In this document: positions 25,262 through 36,274 of the stretch, one piece after another
How positions within the stretch are numbered: position 1 is the stretch's first letter
Layout: the number at the start of each line of letters is the position of its first letter
Source: Oculina patagonica
Lineage: Eukaryota
Length of the DNA: 64,000 nucleotides
Assembly (NCBI RefSeq): GCF_052425735.1
Contig: NC_135764.1
Span: 20,150,001-20,214,000 of the forward strand
Direction: 5' to 3'
Position numbers and translations under genes: made by a program
Notes under the pieces: model-generated
Told to the model about the DNA's origin: nothing
The model's database searches: none
The model's input: the letters and a program-made list of their open reading frames with translations, nothing else

Positions 25262-28200
25262 GTGGAAGGGGAAAGTAAAATCTATTTAAAAAAATTAAAT
25301 AAAATATATTTTTAAAAAACAGGATCTAAAACACTTTTTTTGGTGATGATTTATACAGTATATGGGCAAAAGCGATCACCACCGTTTGCATTGATACGGG
25401 ATTTTTCAAATCGAATTACCTTCGAAAACGTTTCCAAGATTTCCGTCAATCAAAGTTTGAAAGGGTTTCCGACAACATTTCTCGCGAGCGAACACGAAAG
25501 TGAACTGGCGATAAATAAATCAATTCTAACGATGGTAATCGACTTTGAAGGTTCGAGTTAGCAGGAAGATCAAGTTATCGAGGGTTTGAGTTATGGGGAT
25601 TTATAACAGTTGTTTTAATCATTGTTCTCAGTTTTGGCTTCCTCGTTTCCTACGATAACATTACAAAACCAGTTTTAATGTGGCGAATTGTCTAAGAAAA
25701 CGAACCCAGTAAAATCTTTGATAAGTAAAGTCTTCTACGCTGTCGATAGAGCGTGTTTGAAGTCGGTTAGTATCTGTTTAGTCTTAATTTCTCTTGGTTT
25801 AGTGTAACAAGAGTAATAAAATGTTCACTTACCAAGTCACGCCTTCAGTTGCGGGGTACAAACACAAAGTGTAAAACGTAGACACGAAAGTCGTGTAAAA
25901 ACTGTTTGAAGTGCATGAATTGTCGGGTAATAAAAAGAAGTCAAATGCAAAGTAATATAATCTAGATGTGAAGTTAATAATACTCCTTATAATACTGTCA
26001 GGAAATAAAAAATCTAATTACAATATCTTCTACTTAAGACATTTTAGATAGCATTAACTGTGATTAAAGATGTCTTTTACACTTTTCGGAAAGTGTTCTT
26101 TGGTTATCTCATATAATCTTCATTGAAAAAGAAATGAATACGTATGACACAAAGATGATTTATTAGCTGAATGCTATCTATCTTCTAGCCGAGTGCTATC
26201 TTTCTTCTTCTTTAGCAACAAAAGCACTTAATAATATAAGCTTAAATCATTACCTGCACCTTGCGGCGTTGAGCTAAAGTTCTTGGCAGCGTATCCGGTT
26301 TTTTAATATAAACAGTGCCGAAAGTGTGCCGATGGTTTTATTTTCTTATGTAAAGGCTATTAAAAGTGCAGTGCTAATATTTCCAACCGCAAAAGTGAGT
26401 CTATGTAAAGTTCTTGATAAAGATTTAAAAATGGGAATTAATTGTATTTATTTCCGTTTAACAAGTTGCGATACTTTTTGCTACTTCACTGCGCCAAAAG
26501 GCTAGCAATTTTTCGTAACAATTATTGGCTCTTACTTCGTGTAGAAGACACAGTTCACCTATAACAATAGAGAACAAAAGGACAAAAGAACGAGGAATAT
26601 AATAAAAACAAAAGGTTTGCGATGCAGTATTCTATTGTGACGTGTTCTGTGCTTCTACACGAAGAAGGAGCCCAATTACTCCATTGATGTTTGGTTAGTA
26701 GCTTAAATAATTAAGTAACGGAAATTTTGCGTATAAAAGAAAATGAATATTACTTAAGAAAACCGACAGTTCACAGTTTCCCCCGCCGTTCTGTAAGTAA
26801 AATTTTATATTTAAAAATACTGAAGGAGATACAAATTTTATTAAATTTAAATGGCTATGAGCCACTGAACTCGGAAAATGAATTATATGCAAACTAAACC
26901 ATCATTTCAGTAACCAGAAAGGAGCAATATACCTGTTCGTTTGCACACTCAAAAGATTACGGAAACGAAGGAAAACCAACAGCCAATAAAAAAATCCGCA
27001 TTTAAAATGAAATTACCACGGATGAGTTACGCTTTGTCAAATATTTATCAGATCAACGTTCTTCATGTCTGCCTACAGCAACAACAGGTCTTGTTATATA
27101 ACTGGATTTTTTTCCCAACAGCGCGCGCCATTATTGGCTACTTCAAGGTCACATGACATCTAACAATAAAACTGTTTCCCGCCAAAAATCTCTAGGCGGG
27201 CAATATTGCCAATTCTATTATTTCAGAGGGGAACAGTGTAATGTTGCCCGCGAATGTTGCCTCGGGAAACATGGAGGTTGTTGGAAAACAAAATTAATTG
27301 TTGCACTTGGAACCAGTCATTTAGTGTATAATACTGCACGGACTGTTTCTAAGATCACACGTAATGCCACCTAAATAAGCCAAGCAGGAAGGAATCTTTT
27401 ACAGCATCCTCTGTGAATGCTGGTGGTGAGACGTCCGAGAGTCTGATGGCCACGAGTTTCCTCCGGGTGGTCTAGGGCATGCCCTCTGAAATTTTTGGAA
27501 ATTAATGTGAGATTAATTGAAAACAGGTGCATTTTGAGACACAATTTTGTGAAATGTCTGGTCGATTTTTCGAAATTGGTTACTTATATCTGTCCTGATT
27601 TAAGAAAACAAGGCCCCAGGAACTGTCAGGGGCCAGATACTCTCTCAGCGCTCCCCTCCCTTCCCCCTGTGGGTTTCAGAGAGCCCGGGGGCACTGCTAG
27701 GAAGCCTTCCCATGCCCGGTCACAGCTGAGGTCTCAAAGACCTCAAGGCTACTTAGTCCAGCCCCCAGAAAACCAAAAGCGGGGAGCAATGCTTTACGGA
27801 AACAAGCCAAAAAGCCGACTTTAGCCAGTCCCCCACCCCCAAAGCCGGATTGCAATTCAGTCTGACCCAGGGCTCCTTAGGGTTGTTAGGTCAGGGCTCA
27901 AGCAACCTACCCACGGGGTTGTTGAAGCTGCCCCCTCTCAAATTTCTCGGATCGCAATGGCTTGAAAGCAGACGCAGTCACGAACGGGTCACGGAATCCA
28001 CGTTTTGTCAAATCCAGAGAGATAGCTAGAGATATACTGTGATAATAACAATGTTTTTTTGGGGGAAGCTGGGCATTGTTTTTTTTGGAGGCCGGGGAGG
28101 GGGGATTGGGGGGGAGGGAGCTTGTACCCCTCAAATACCCTTGATAGAACCTTGATAAGCACACGTTCGTGCGGGCAAAGGACATATTTTCTCTCAGCAT

Positions 28201-30676: not shown

Positions 30677-33600
30677 TTAAAGTACTATGCAAAAAGTGTT
30701 TCTTACACGGTGATGCTGTTTTTGCCCAAAATCTTGTGAAGGATTGTTACTCTCTGTCGACTGTTGTAGATCAAGTGACTGGTGCTGAACAGCAGCCATA
30801 CTGTCAAGAGCAGCTGGGACATTAACACGATTAGCTCCGAGCCTTTTACATCTAATGAACACAGCACGATCATGGAACTCCTGGGCCTGTTCAAAGTCGC
30901 CTAACGCTTTGTAAACAGAACCCAAGTCACTGTAAATAGTTGCAACATCAACATGCTCAGGTCCAAGCGCCTTCAGCTGAATGTTTAAAGCAAGATGATG
31001 ATACTCCTTGGCCTGCTCAAAGTCGCCTAGGGCCTGGTGAACAGAACCCAAGTTACTGTAAGTAACTGCAACATCAACATGCTCAGGTCCAAGCGCCTTC
31101 AGGGAAATGTTCAAATCACGGTGATGATACTCCTTGGCCTGCTCAAAGTCGCCGAGGGCCTGGTGAACAGAACCCAAGTTACTGTAAGTAGTTGCAACAT
31201 CAACATGCTCAGGTCCAAGCGCCTTCAGCTGAATCTTTAAAGCAAGGTGATGATACTCCTTGGCCTGCTCAAAGTCGCCTAGGGCCTGGTGAACAGAACC
31301 CAACTTACTGTAAGTAGTTGCAACATCAACATGGTCAGGTCCAAGCGCCTTCAGCTGAATGTTTAAAGCAAGATGATGATACTCCTTGGCCTGCTCAAAG
31401 TCGCCTAGGGCCTGGTGAACAGAACCCAAGTTACTGTAAGTAGTTGCAACATGAACATGCTCAGGTCCAAGCGCCTTCAGCTGAATGTTTAAAGCAAGAT
31501 GATGATACTCCTTGGCCTGCTCAAAGTCGCCTAGGGCCTGGTGAACAGAACCCAAGTTACTGTAAGTAGTTGCAACATGAACATGCTCAGGTCCAAGCGC
31601 CTTCAGGGAAATGTTTAAATCACGGTGATGATACTCCTTGGCCTGCTCAAAGTCGCCGAGGGCCTGGTGAACAGAACCCAAGTTACTGTAAGTAGTTGCA
31701 ACATCAACATGGTCAGGTCCAAGCGCCTTCAGCTGAATGTTTAAAGCAAGATGATGATACTCCTTGGCCTGCTCAAAGTCGCCTAGGGCCTGGTGAACAG
31801 AACCCAACTTACTGTAAGTAGTTGCAACATGAACATGCTCAGGTCCAAGCGCCTTCAGCTGAATGTTTAAAGCAAGATGATGATACTCCTTGGCCTGCTC
31901 AAAGTCGCCTAGGGCCTGGTGAACAGAACCCAACTTACTGTAAGTAGTTGCAACATCAACATGGTCAGGTCCAAGCGCCTTCAGCTGAATGTTTAAAGCA
32001 AGATGATGATACTCCTTGGCCTGCTCAAAGTCGCCTAGGGCCTGGTGAACAGAACCCAAGTTACTATAAGTAGTTGCAACATGAACATGCTCAGGTCCAA
32101 GCGCCTTCAGCTGAATGTTTAAAGCAAGATGATGATACTCCTTGGCCTGCTCAAAGTCGCCTAGGGCCTGGTGAACAGAACCCAAGTTACTGTAAGTAAC
32201 TGCAACATCAACATGCTCAGGTCCAAGCGCCTTCAGGGAAATGTTTAAATCACGGTGATGATACTCCTTGGCCTGCTCAAAGTCGCCTAGGGCCTGGTGA
32301 ACAGAACCCAACTTACTGTAAGTAGTTGCAATATTAACATGCTCAGGTCCAAGCGCCTTTAGCTGAATGTTTAAAGCAAGGTGATGATACTCCTTGGCCT
32401 GCTCAAAGTCGGCTAGGGCCTGGTGAACAGAACCCAAGTTACTGTAAGTAGTTGCAACATCAACATGCTCAGGTCCAAGCGCCTTCAGCTGAATCTTTAA
32501 AGCAAGGTGATGATACTCCTTGGCCTGCTCAAAGTCGCCTAGGGCCTGGTGAACAGAACCCAACTTACTGTAAGTAGTTGCAACATCAACATGCTCAGGT
32601 CCAAGCGTCTTCAGGCGAATGTTTAAAGCAAGCTGATGATACTCCTTGGCCTGCTCAAAGTCACCTAAGGCCTGGTAAACAGAACCCAGCTGAACGTAAG
32701 CAGTTGCAACATGAACATGCTCAGCTCCAAGCGTCTTCAGGTAAATAGTAAGACAACGATGATGATACTCCTTGGCCTGCTCAAAGTCGGCTAGGGCCTG
32801 GTGAACAGAACCCAAGTTAATGTAAGTAGTTGCAACATCAACATGCTCAGGTCCAAGCACCTTCAGGCGAATGTTAAGAGCTTGGTGATGATACGCCTTG
32901 GCCTGCTCAAAGTCGCCTAAGGCCTGGTAAACAGAACCCAGCTGAACGTAAGCAGTTGCAACATGAACATGCTCAGCTCCAAGCGTCTTCAGGTAAATAG
33001 TAAGACAACGATGATGATACTCCTTGGCCTGCTCAAAGTCGCCTAGGGCCTGGTGAACAAAACCCAGGTGACTGTAGGTAGTTGCAACATGAACATGCTC
33101 AGGTCCAAGCTTCTTTAGGTAAATAGTAAGAGAACGATGATGATGCTCTTTGGCCTGCTCAAAGTCGCCTAGGTCCTGGTGAACAGAACCCAAGTCACTG
33201 TAAGTAGTTGCATCATCAACATGCTCAGGTCCAAGCGTCTTCAGGCAAATGTTTAGAGCACGGTGATGATACTCCTTTGCCTGCTCAAAGTCGCCTAGGG
33301 CCTGGTGAACAGAACCCAAGTTACTGTAAGTAGTTGCAACATCAACGTGCTCAGGTCCAAGGGCCTTCAGGCGAATGTTTAAAGCACGTTGATGATACTC
33401 CTTGGCCTGCTTAAAGTCGCCTAGGGCCTGGTGAACAGAACCCAGCTGAACGTAAGTAGTTGCAACATCAACATGCTCAGGTCCGTTCTCTTCTAGAAAA
33501 GTTGCTAATGAGTAATCATAATATCGTTTGGCCTCGTAAAAGGCGCAATGATTCTGGCAAGTTTGACCGAGCTTTACCATTCCAGTTTTGACAACTTGGC

Positions 33601-35586
33601 TTTCGATACCAAATTTTCAATATTTAAAATGAAAGTCCTTAAGTGAGGCAAGATACGTTTCGTGTGCAAAACAGTTTGTTCGTCTAGCCAGTGTTCCTCT
33701 GGTAGTATATCGTCTATGAACTGGTCAAATGCAGTAACAGCCCCATTCACAGCTTTATAATGAGTGCTGTCCGAATAGTTCTTCGTTACAGTCTGAATAA
33801 CATCACGTACAACTTGATGCACGCCAATGTAGACGCCGCTATCTTCTTCTTCAAGTAAAATCAAGGAACATCGTTGGATCGTCGTGATAATTATTTCTTT
33901 ATCTTGAAGGTCTTCATCTACGTTCTCAATATAATTGATCACGATGTTGAGACTCAATGGCTGTGGCGCACAGAGGAAAAGGAACCTAAACGTGTGATCT
34001 ATGACTTTGTCGGATGCCATCATTTCTTTAACAGCTAGTGTTGTCGCTGCTGTCATAGATTTTGGGTAGCTTGGATTCGTCTCAGATAGAATGGTTTCAG
34101 TAGTTACACGCTGGCCCTTTTCTACTTTCTCAAGGAAGTCGTGCCAGCCAAACTGTGATGTTATTTTGCTCTGTCGAAGTTGTTTGACATAGGTGGCGGT
34201 GCTTGCTAGGGCAAGAGGTTGGTAGTCCAGTGCTTGTGCAACCACTTTTGCCATATCGGTGTCATCGATACCTGAAAGGATGGCTAATAATGAAATGGCA
34301 TCATCGGGCTCCATACCCTTTTTCACTGAAATGTGCTGAATGAAGAAGCTTGTTAAAGGGATAGACGCAGTGTCCTGTGTTGTAATAAGCAGTTGACCTC
34401 TTAGCCATTGCTCATTTCCAGGTTCCGGTAAATGAACATGCATTCGAGATATGCTTTTGACATTGTCAGCTACAAGTAGCCACGATGTGTAAAACTCAAG
34501 TTTTGCGCTTATCAGCGTCTTCAGATGGGAAATCTTTTCGACTGTTTTCAAATCCTTAGACTGAAGGATATTTGTAACTGCATACTCTGGACACTTTAAT
34601 TGTCGAGCGAAAGAGAAATACGATTCCAGTAGTGTATCTAGGCTTTCAGCATTTAAAGTCATCACGAATGTAGTGGCGCTTGGATATTCTTGGGCATCAT
34701 CGAAAAATCGCTTAGCTACAAGACCGGCCAGCTGCGATTTGCCACTTCCAGGATTACCTGAGATGTACAGGTAGCTTAAATTGTTTTCACTGGTACGTTT
34801 AAGCTCCTTTAGCTGTTGTGCAATATCAGCCACCTCACAGTTGCGATGTGCGATATAGTGTGAAGGTTTGGGAGGAAGAATGCAAAATGGAGACATATCG
34901 TTCTGAAGCTGATCTTCAAGCACCCGTTTCTCTTTTTCCGTTTCGTGTAGCTGATGTTCAATACCCTGTAAATGCTCTTCTTTGTCTTGAAGCTTGTTCG
35001 CAAGTCCCTCCTGTTGCTTCTCTTTTTCTTGAAGTTCCTTTTTTAAGTCTTCAACTTTGTTTAAGACACCTGTTAACTCCTCCGTGGGAAAGGTTATCTG
35101 GTTTGCGACGTTTTGAATTTGCACAGTGGATAGACCGAGTCCACGAAATGCAGCATGAACTTTACCCATAACATTTTGCAAATCTGCGTCTGAAAGTTTG
35201 CCTTGTGGCATGTGAGCAAATTCTTCGTTTCGAAACCTTCTTAGATCATCTACATGCGATTGGACTACCGCGCAAAGGCCGGGGCCGACGCAATCAGAGA
35301 AAAGAATGGCGTAAAACAGCATGGTACAATCCCATTCACCTCTATCTCCATTAATCATGGTAGCCAAGAGATGCGCATTTCTTCTTTGGTTTCGCGGAGA
35401 TTCTGCATTATAGAAGTCCCTTCCATTTCGAGGCTCATCTTTCCATTCCCCCATTGTTGCTTTGTAACGCTTGTCCCATTCCTGTTTGAAGATTGATCGC
35501 AGACCTTCGGCCAGAATATCGGTGGTGACAAAACAAATCCTGTAGTAGTTCAGTTGGTCTGCAGTGTATTCTGTTGCAGTGGCCAT
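30677..35586 (-). pseudogene. NLR-like HEPN - coiled coil - NB-ARC/STAND - TPR gene, copy 2 (split by frameshift)
   Basis: All motifs intact (RNEEFAH at 35212-35232, GNPGSGKS). A net 10-bp deletion at ~33592-33598 splits it into a HEPN-STAND ORF (stop 33574) and a TPR-only ORF (ATG 33580, 967 aa). Confidence 0.85.
30839..33484 (-). repeat. Coding tandem array, 21 x 126 bp TPR units
   Basis: 32 + 21x42 + 53 = 967 aa matches the ORF length. Confidence 0.97.
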
Positions 35587-35748
35587 GTTTCTTTTGTTAT
35601 TTGGATTCGCAACCCCTTTGTGAACACAATGACACTTTTTATTAGCAAACAAAATGGAACAAAAAATATGAAGTATCGTTTTTAATCTTTTTTAAGAAAA
35701 ACAAATTGGCCCGATGTTTTTAACAGGACATACAAATATGTTAAATTA

Positions 35749-36274
35749 TTTAAACAATAGGATGTTTCTGTCGAGGAACTATCAGCTGATAGTTGTCCCG
35801 CAGAAATTTGACGCTCTTAAAACAAATAGCTTCGAGGGCTTATGTCCTAGTTTAAAGAAAAGAAAAATTCTTAAAAGGCAACTATTAAGACCGATAGTTT
35901 CGAGACTGAGACAGTCTATCGTTTTTATTCTTTACCACTAAATTTTTTACGCGCGCCCAATTAAAAAACAAGCATATGCATCGTGAATTATTTTTTACTA
36001 GTCAGGATAAAACAACTAAATTGAAAGCCGAAATTAAACAAAGGAAACAAAACCAGACAAAAAAAAAAACACTTAATGGAGTGAATTTGGTTGGGGTTTA
36101 TTGTCTGCAGGCACGCTTGTATATAAAAAATTTCACGGGCGGGCACTATCCATCCGGGCATTTTTCTCGGACCGGTAGTATGCGCTGAAAGTGCTCTCCC
36201 TGGATGAACACTATCGCGTTTCGTGAAAAATTTAAACCAATCAGAATCGGAGAAAATTTAGTTGTCAACTATAA
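35749..36274 (+). mobile_element. Single un-nested copy of the ~530-bp hairpin-ended element
   Basis: TTTAAACAATAG ... CCAATCAGAATCGGAGAAAATTTAGTTGTCAACTATAA. Contains the empty site (AGTAT|GCGCTG, ~36181) that is filled in units 1 and 3. Confidence 0.75.

Follow-up and report, generated by a model that had tools for sequence, protein, structure and literature searches.

The 42-residue repeats encoded at 30839-33484 of a 64,000-nucleotide stretch of the Oculina patagonica genome (contig NC_135764.1, positions 20,150,001 to 20,214,000, assembly GCF_052425735.1; hereafter the window, to which all coordinates refer) probably form the sensor domain of one of three tandem genes in which a HEPN-like domain, a coiled coil and a P-loop STAND NTPase precede an array of tetratricopeptide repeats (TPRs). 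Variation at residues lining the groove of the TPR superhelix, together with shuffling of the repeat units, would diversify the specificity of this domain. The 126-bp units evolve in concert, homogenised by unequal crossing-over or gene conversion, while purifying selection holds the scaffold on which the helices pack. Residues predicted to line the concave groove (here unit positions 6, 9, 12, 13 and 38, and in relatives also 16, 19 and 20) vary and reassort between units. By analogy with kinesin light chain (KLC), an extended molecule resembling a peptide is the most likely ligand of the groove, with specificity set by the groove residues as well as by the number and order of units, and binding would be signalled through the NTPase and the HEPN-like domain. 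Germline diversification of such a groove by point mutation and unit shuffling, as in fungal NLRs with repeats of high internal conservation (HIC), is the most likely mechanism by which new specificities would arise.

Repeat arrays, variable residues and unit shuffling

Three arrays with a 126-bp period were detected by TRF in the whole window (10431-11423, 30863-33484 and 53979-56334), each 90-94% self-matching, all on the minus strand and all within long open reading frames (ORFs). We refer to the corresponding tandem paralogues as A1, A2 and A3. Anchoring on the loop motif yields 8, 21 and 19 units, respectively, at exact 42-codon spacing and with zero stop codons. The resulting count of 48 corrects the 49 units of an earlier note on this DNA, whose description of a near-fixed 42-residue scaffold otherwise holds. 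The interval 30839-33484 corresponds exactly to units 1-21 of the middle paralogue, A2, and the window is free of any N. Units of whole arrays share 82-86% protein identity, and A2 units 8-20 have a mean pairwise identity of 91.7% in protein over 546 residues and 95.4% in DNA. Between units of the window, identity is lower in protein (83%) than in DNA (90%).

Variation within this scaffold is concentrated at few positions, as the per-position counts confirm. Eleven of the 42 unit positions are invariant across the 48 units, and nine positions (38, 13, 6, 33, 34, 41, 9, 36, then 7/12) account for 64% of the amino acid mismatches, which average 7.09 per unit pair. Amino acid entropy is highest at positions 38, 13, 6, 41, 34, 33, 36, 9 and 12. 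Codon 6 reads GAT, CAT, AAT or TAT in 25, 12, 5 and 5 units, respectively, so that all four first bases are used with an otherwise fixed third base; the earlier note had recorded this D/H/N/Y alternation, and a single GAG is the only addition. Position 9 is occupied by T, A, S, V or I, positions 12-13 by SN, SK, VQ, SD, SQ, TY, SH, IN or GN, and the 33-38 block by LALNIQ (13 units), LALNIY (9), RDLNIS (8), RSLTIY (2), RCLTIY (2), RALNIR (1) and others. The variable sites listed previously were thus right at 6, 9, 12-13 and 33-38. Position 16, also listed, is near-fixed in the window (S44/T3/F1) and hypervariable in relatives, and positions 41, 7 and 19, which vary as well, had been left out. 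As a further observation on codon 6, Asn6 is always accompanied by Ile7 (AAT ATT; 5/5), compared with 2 of the 25 units carrying Asp6. Asn6-Ile7 is a two-codon linked variant, found in A2 unit 10 (32225-32350) and in A3 units 7, 9, 16 and 17.

The variants recur in new combinations. The pairwise homoplasy index (PHI) of the window units is 0.205, against 0.282 +/- 0.021 when site order is permuted (p<0.0005); 24% of 1,596 pairs of informative sites are incompatible, and the four-gamete test sets the minimum number of recombination events (Rmin) at 26 within 126 bp. Fifteen combinations of positions 6 and 13 are seen, and the mutual information between the two does not exceed the random level. 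The recurrence of variants in different combinations, described in the earlier note, is thus real, while positions 33, 34 and 38 are tightly linked (p<0.0005). RDLNIS, LALNIQ and LALNIY therefore behave as cassettes, which differ by as many as five nucleotides, including synonymous ones. Blocks of two to four units are duplicated in A2 and A3, and the nearest neighbours of most units belong to the same array, which is the pattern that unequal crossing-over gives.

The suggestion of concerted evolution is likewise well founded, since units diverge by 5-13% within one gene and by 15-39% between family members. In the nearest relative, L004, unit divergence from the window genes (15-17%) equals that of the non-repeat part (15%), and its own units differ by 5%. 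The three window arrays share one unit pool, with divergences of 7-11% within and 9-11% between arrays. Exchange between these arrays is not claimed; the closest inter-array pairs are 1-5 nt apart, which is not above expectation under purifying selection and with ~400 comparisons. No unit-like DNA occurs in the window beyond the three arrays, and VLR-like donor cassettes were rejected for it on this ground.

Predicted groove placement and tests of selection

An AlphaFold2 model of units 8-15 (predicted local distance difference test score 89.7) folds into 16 helices in 8 units, helix A spanning unit positions 5-21 and helix B 24-41. Foldseek returned the TPR domains of LGN (TM 0.8-0.87) and of KLC1/2 (probability 1.00) as the best solved matches, and HMMER aligned the unit to the KLC1 repeats without gaps. 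KLC1 residues reported to contact the JIP1 or TorsinA peptide (V305, K309, Y313, R327, K340, N343, N344, L347, L348, N351, N259, R266, N301, N302 and N386; Pernigo et al. 2018, PMC6214655) correspond, in this order, to unit positions 16, 20, 24, 38, 9, 12, 13, 16, 17, 20, 12, 19, 12, 13 and 13, i.e., to a contact set made up of positions 9, 12, 13, 16, 17, 19, 20, 24 and 38. All residue letters of the alignment agree with the published numbering. In KLC2, the single substitution S328N at the equivalent of position 12 increases affinity ~37-fold (PMC6214655) and switches cargo specificity.

The variable positions 9, 12, 13, 16, 19, 20 and 38 coincide with KLC1-JIP1 contacts. The location of positions 6, 9, 13 and 16 on one face of helix A, anticipated in the earlier note, is supported by this correspondence, which identifies 9, 13 and 16 as KLC1-TPR contacts. 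Positions 6, 33, 34, 36 and 41 were placed by helical periodicity only. Position 6 would thereby fall within the opening turn of helix A and share a face with 9 and 13, position 34 would be the canonical packing alanine of TPRs, and 34, 38 and 41 would form one helical stripe. Of the 33-38 block, listed as variable in the earlier note, 38 alone is a KLC1 contact; most of the block is no known binding face, it includes the packing position 34, and it varies at 33, 34 and 38 as one cassette.

Relatives of the window genes provide independent evidence on these positions. Across the 74 relatives that have six or more units, variability along the repeat correlates with that of the window (Spearman 0.56, p=1e-4), and the most variable positions in the 16 relatives with an internal identity of at least 0.8 are 38, 6, 19, 16, 20 and 9. 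As an aside, these 16 of 74 (22%) come close to the 21% of HIC repeats among fungal NLR TPR domains (Dyrka 2014), the thresholds being different in the two cases. Selection was assessed at the DNA level in 8 homogenised relatives, for which the contact positions had been defined beforehand from KLC1. The ratio of non-synonymous to synonymous diversity (piN/piS) of the contact set was 2.17, 2.82, 2.43, 1.73, 0.78, 3.24, 2.94 and 1.32, with a mean of 2.18 and values >1 in 7/8 relatives (p=0.003 in a t-test against 1 and p=0.008 in a Wilcoxon test), and that of the remaining sites ranged from 0.22 to 1.02. When the relatives were pooled, the corresponding ratio per position (omega) exceeded 1.5 only at 6, 9, 13, 16, 19, 20 and 38, reached 2.4-3.1 at 38, 16 and 19, and was higher at contact than at other positions (Mann-Whitney p=0.0026).

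In the window, where piS among units is 0.147, omega is 1.22 for the contact set (unit bootstrap 1.00-1.52), 1.72 for position 6, 1.71 for positions 33/34/36/41 and 0.23 for the other 28 sites. Diversifying selection, raised by analogy in the earlier note, is thus suggested by the relatives at groove sites, with only a modest excess in the window. Parsimony counts of non-synonymous and synonymous changes on a FastTree phylogeny of the units were 15/0 at position 6, 15/2 at position 13 and 11/2 at position 41 (Poisson p 0.001, 0.001 and 0.006, respectively, versus the global synonymous rate). The variability of the helix-B block is a feature of this cluster and is not shared by the relatives, in which omega at these sites is 0-1.1.

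State of the three copies and alternative readings

Each copy has the gene order HEPN-like N-terminal domain, coiled coil, P-loop NTPase and TPR array. In A2, all on the minus strand, the non-repeat part extends over 33600-35586 and is followed by an N-terminal capping segment, repeat-like and in the TPR reading frame (33485-33597), the array of 21 in-register KLC-type units (30839-33484), and a degenerate 22nd unit with the C-terminal tail up to the stop codon (30677-30838). The minus-strand counterparts in A1 are a non-repeat part at 11424-13534 and an 8-unit array at 10416-11423, and in A3 a non-repeat part at 56335-58446 and a 19-unit array, open throughout, at 53941-56334. The A2 TPR ORF matches the Pfam families TPR_12 (1014 bits, E=0; cut-off 30.1) and TPR_10 (659 bits, E=5e-205; cut-off 27.5). 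Its NTPase carries a Walker A motif, GNPGSGKS, at 34735-34758 and a Walker B-like hhhhD motif at 34459-34479, and the ORFs thus place a P-loop NTPase between an N-terminal domain and C-terminal repeats, which is a STAND/NLR-like order. Pfam NB-ARC and NACHT gave no match, whereas AAA_16, NPHP3_N and nSTAND3 did, all under their curated cut-offs; the gene is therefore NLR-like by architecture rather than a demonstrated NB-ARC or NACHT member. HEPN matches of the N-terminal domain are weak and below cut-off (HEPN_Swt1, E=0.027; HEPN_DZIP3, E=0.15), and this domain in A2 contains an R-x4-H motif (R-N-E-E-F-A-H; 35212-35238).

Lesions in the assembly affect all three copies. In A1, the loss of 1 bp at 13449/13450 changes the reading frame around codon 29, counted from the ATG at 13534, and a 31-bp deletion past unit 8 (junction 10415/10416) fuses this unit out of frame to the last one; a DNA contig of sequencing run X1 carries a joint that we read as this junction. 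In A3, an in-frame TAG occupies 56674-56676, a site at which A1 and A2 encode Gln. Compared with A1 and A3, A2 lacks 10 bp, a deletion that in the assembly shifts the frame between the NTPase and TPR parts. However, 335-nt contigs of DNA runs X1 and X2, which come from different studies, match 33460-33796 with the sole difference of two bases fewer at 33598, the missing window bases being 33598-33599 (no strand assigned). The A2 deletion is thus 12 bp long and in frame according to these runs, so that the frameshift reflects either an error of the assembly or a single allele. Since the non-repeat parts of the paralogues show an omega of 0.26-0.44 at a synonymous divergence (dS) of 0.07-0.21, the copies have been under purifying selection through most of their history. 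Among the RNA-labelled runs there are contigs 97-99% identical to the N-terminal half, a weak indication of transcription. Exact look-up in the protein collection found neither the A2 nor the A3 product, and the A1 cluster has a single member, with no allelic proteins.

Several of these points count against a sensor domain diversified at its groove. All three copies bear a lesion in the assembly, and near-identical matches from RNA runs are slight evidence of expression. Surface positions were assigned indirectly, from the KLC1 alignment, the published contact list and helical periodicity. The strongest sites of the window, 33, 34, 36 and 41, fall outside the KLC1 contact set and do not vary in relatives, and the contact set itself is only marginally above neutrality in the window, the lower bound of its omega being 1.00. 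Furthermore, recombination inflates tree-based counts, so the site-wise p-values are indicative only.

The most serious alternative, which we nevertheless regard as unlikely, is relaxed constraint alone, whereby exposed groove sites of homogenised repeats drift freely, with no selection for diversity and no variable recognition. The marginal contact omega of the window would fit such drift, as would the contact piN/piS of 0.78 in relative L005 and the fact that, with recombination taken into account, none of the individual sites comes through a rank-free test. Drift does not readily account, however, for a contact ratio above 1 in seven of eight independent relatives, for the pooled values at positions 38, 16 and 19, or for window units that are less alike in protein than in DNA.

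Less probable still is a decaying cluster, in which three young pseudogenes would preserve the variation pattern as a fossil of past family function. The two A1 deletions, the longer of which was also read in a contig, the in-frame TAG of A3, the frameshift of A2 in the window and the missing A2 and A3 proteins are what such decay would leave. Against this, two DNA runs contradict the A2 frameshift, all 48 units are open, and RNA-run contigs match the N-terminal half closely; the low omega of the non-repeat parts further implies that any inactivation is recent.

A code in which one repeat reads one monomer, as in TALE or PPR proteins, or a somatic reshuffling of units within the colony resembling VLR or VDJ systems, is very improbable: positions 6 and 13 do assort independently, and the Asn pairs of adjacent KLC1 repeats hold successive positions of the peptide backbone (PMC6214655), which lends the groove some modularity, but at least seven positions per unit vary instead of one or two, the window has no stray donor units outside the arrays, odd joints in short contigs do not separate paralogues from rearrangements, and ordinary unequal crossing-over explains the block duplications of A2 and A3. 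The TALE/PPR-like modular code that the earlier note had entertained was rejected as unsupported, variation at so many positions being unlike a two-residue code, and nothing was found that speaks for somatic rearrangement.

Known systems and genomic neighbourhood

The A2 array matches the HIC NLR-type repeats already known from fungi and recently surveyed across life. Dyrka et al. (2014) described fungal NLRs in which NB-ARC or NACHT domains precede 42-residue TPRs that are polymorphic in number and carry selected sites on the concave face, as modelled on KLC2 (PMC4986451), and set the HIC definition at an identity of 85% or more over 100 residues or more. A2 units 8-20 exceed both values, variation in the family maps to the predicted concave surface at 9, 12, 13, 16, 19, 20 and 38, with the window-specific positions 33, 34, 36 and 41 mapping elsewhere, and unit number differs between the paralogues (8, 21 and 19). 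Like the fungal HIC NLRs with TPRs (Podospora Pa_2_10340 and the het-z/PaPnt1 group; PMC4986451; Ament-Velasquez and Saupe 2026, PMC13449251), the coral genes combine a STAND NTPase with highly conserved 42-residue TPRs downstream of it, few variable positions on the predicted concave side, recombination between repeats, possible signs of positive selection and a putative N-terminal effector domain of enzymatic or death type. Unlike them, they form an animal (scleractinian) family with a HEPN-like N terminus and no Pfam NB-ARC/NACHT match. In Podospora, individuals have been shown to differ in repeat number, whereas the coral counts are from paralogues of one assembly, and three selected sites in the fungal paper compare with about eight that recur in the coral family.

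The resemblance to HET-E-type fungal NLRs suggested in the earlier note is upheld by the contrast between divergence within and between genes and by the groove piN/piS of the relatives. HET-E, HET-D and HET-R of Podospora (the HNWD family) undergo concerted evolution, diversifying selection on the ligand face and shuffling within and between paralogues. Their repeats are WD40 beta-propellers with proven allorecognition, whereas the coral repeats are TPR solenoids. The NB-ARC-TPR proteins of Ectocarpus (Zambounis et al. 2012, PMC3341825) also have 42-residue TPRs behind a STAND NTPase, with module shuffling, diversifying selection, gene clusters and pseudogenes; they carry one repeat per exon and diversify by exon shuffling (PMC3341825), whereas each coral array is one continuous ORF. 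Kinesin light chains (KLC1/KLC2; PDB 6FUZ, 3ZFW and 3NF1) share the 42-residue TPR subtype, the gap-free alignment and the groove contacts 9, 12, 13, 16, 19, 20 and 38, but they have six diverged and conserved repeats that bind fixed cargo motifs, and no NTPase, in place of the 8-21 homogenised repeats of the coral, in which groove residues vary. TALE and PPR proteins resemble the coral genes in that their tandem repeats are almost identical and a few variable residues could determine specificity. They recognise nucleic acids, however, with one or two residues of each repeat specifying a single base, whereas the fold found in the coral binds peptides in its solved relatives.

Of 8,000 scored candidates, 1,740 proteins matched the non-repeat part at E<=0.001, and the named matches are scleractinian (Oculina patagonica, Desmophyllum, Orbicella, Pocillopora and Montipora). 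The molecules by which corals discriminate self from non-self, or partners from pathogens, are largely unknown. A family of this size (>1,700 database proteins at that threshold) offers candidate variable receptors that can be tested, and points to the precise residues for mutation or exchange. Its repeats are homogenised, but several species show an excess of amino acid change at the residues predicted to contact the ligand. The principle of fungal HIC NLRs is thereby extended to an animal at the level of residues, where only survey counts had been available; no residue-level description of such repeats in corals came up in our literature searches. It is conceivable, though improbable, that the family constitutes a germline-encoded, fast-reshuffling and highly polymorphic recognition system, serving allorecognition or the recognition of particular symbiont or pathogen strains, with unit order and groove residues differing between individuals and possibly between cell lineages. 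Such a system would be the animal counterpart of the fungal het-type HIC NLRs.

Three family members are located on one 1.5-Mb contig of another assembly (L004, P0005, P0006, P0011), two of them 77-78% and the third 80% identical to A1, and the tandem cluster seems to be conserved in this related coral. In the window, self-comparison reveals three tandem segmental duplicates of ~22 kb, each comprising a rhodopsin-type G-protein-coupled receptor (GPCR)-like ORF and one TPR gene. GPCR-like ORFs of 310 residues (7tm_1, E=1e-27) are found on the minus strand at 2372-3304 and 49003-49935, within the duplication, and the middle copy is degraded, leaving a 159-residue ORF as a remnant around 24322-25600. 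Upstream of all three TPR genes lies an element of ~530 bp (14062-14599, 35747-36274 and 59005-60534), present as a direct tandem pair at 59463-60521 (98.7%) that is inverted relative to the copy at 14062-14591. This may be a transposable element or a repeat shared by the promoter regions. On the minus strand at 18207-19196, an ATG-initiated ORF of 329 residues that matches no Pfam family falls in a segment only partly common to duplicates 1 and 2 (17738-18266 matches 39417-39952) and is possibly the remnant of a mobile element.

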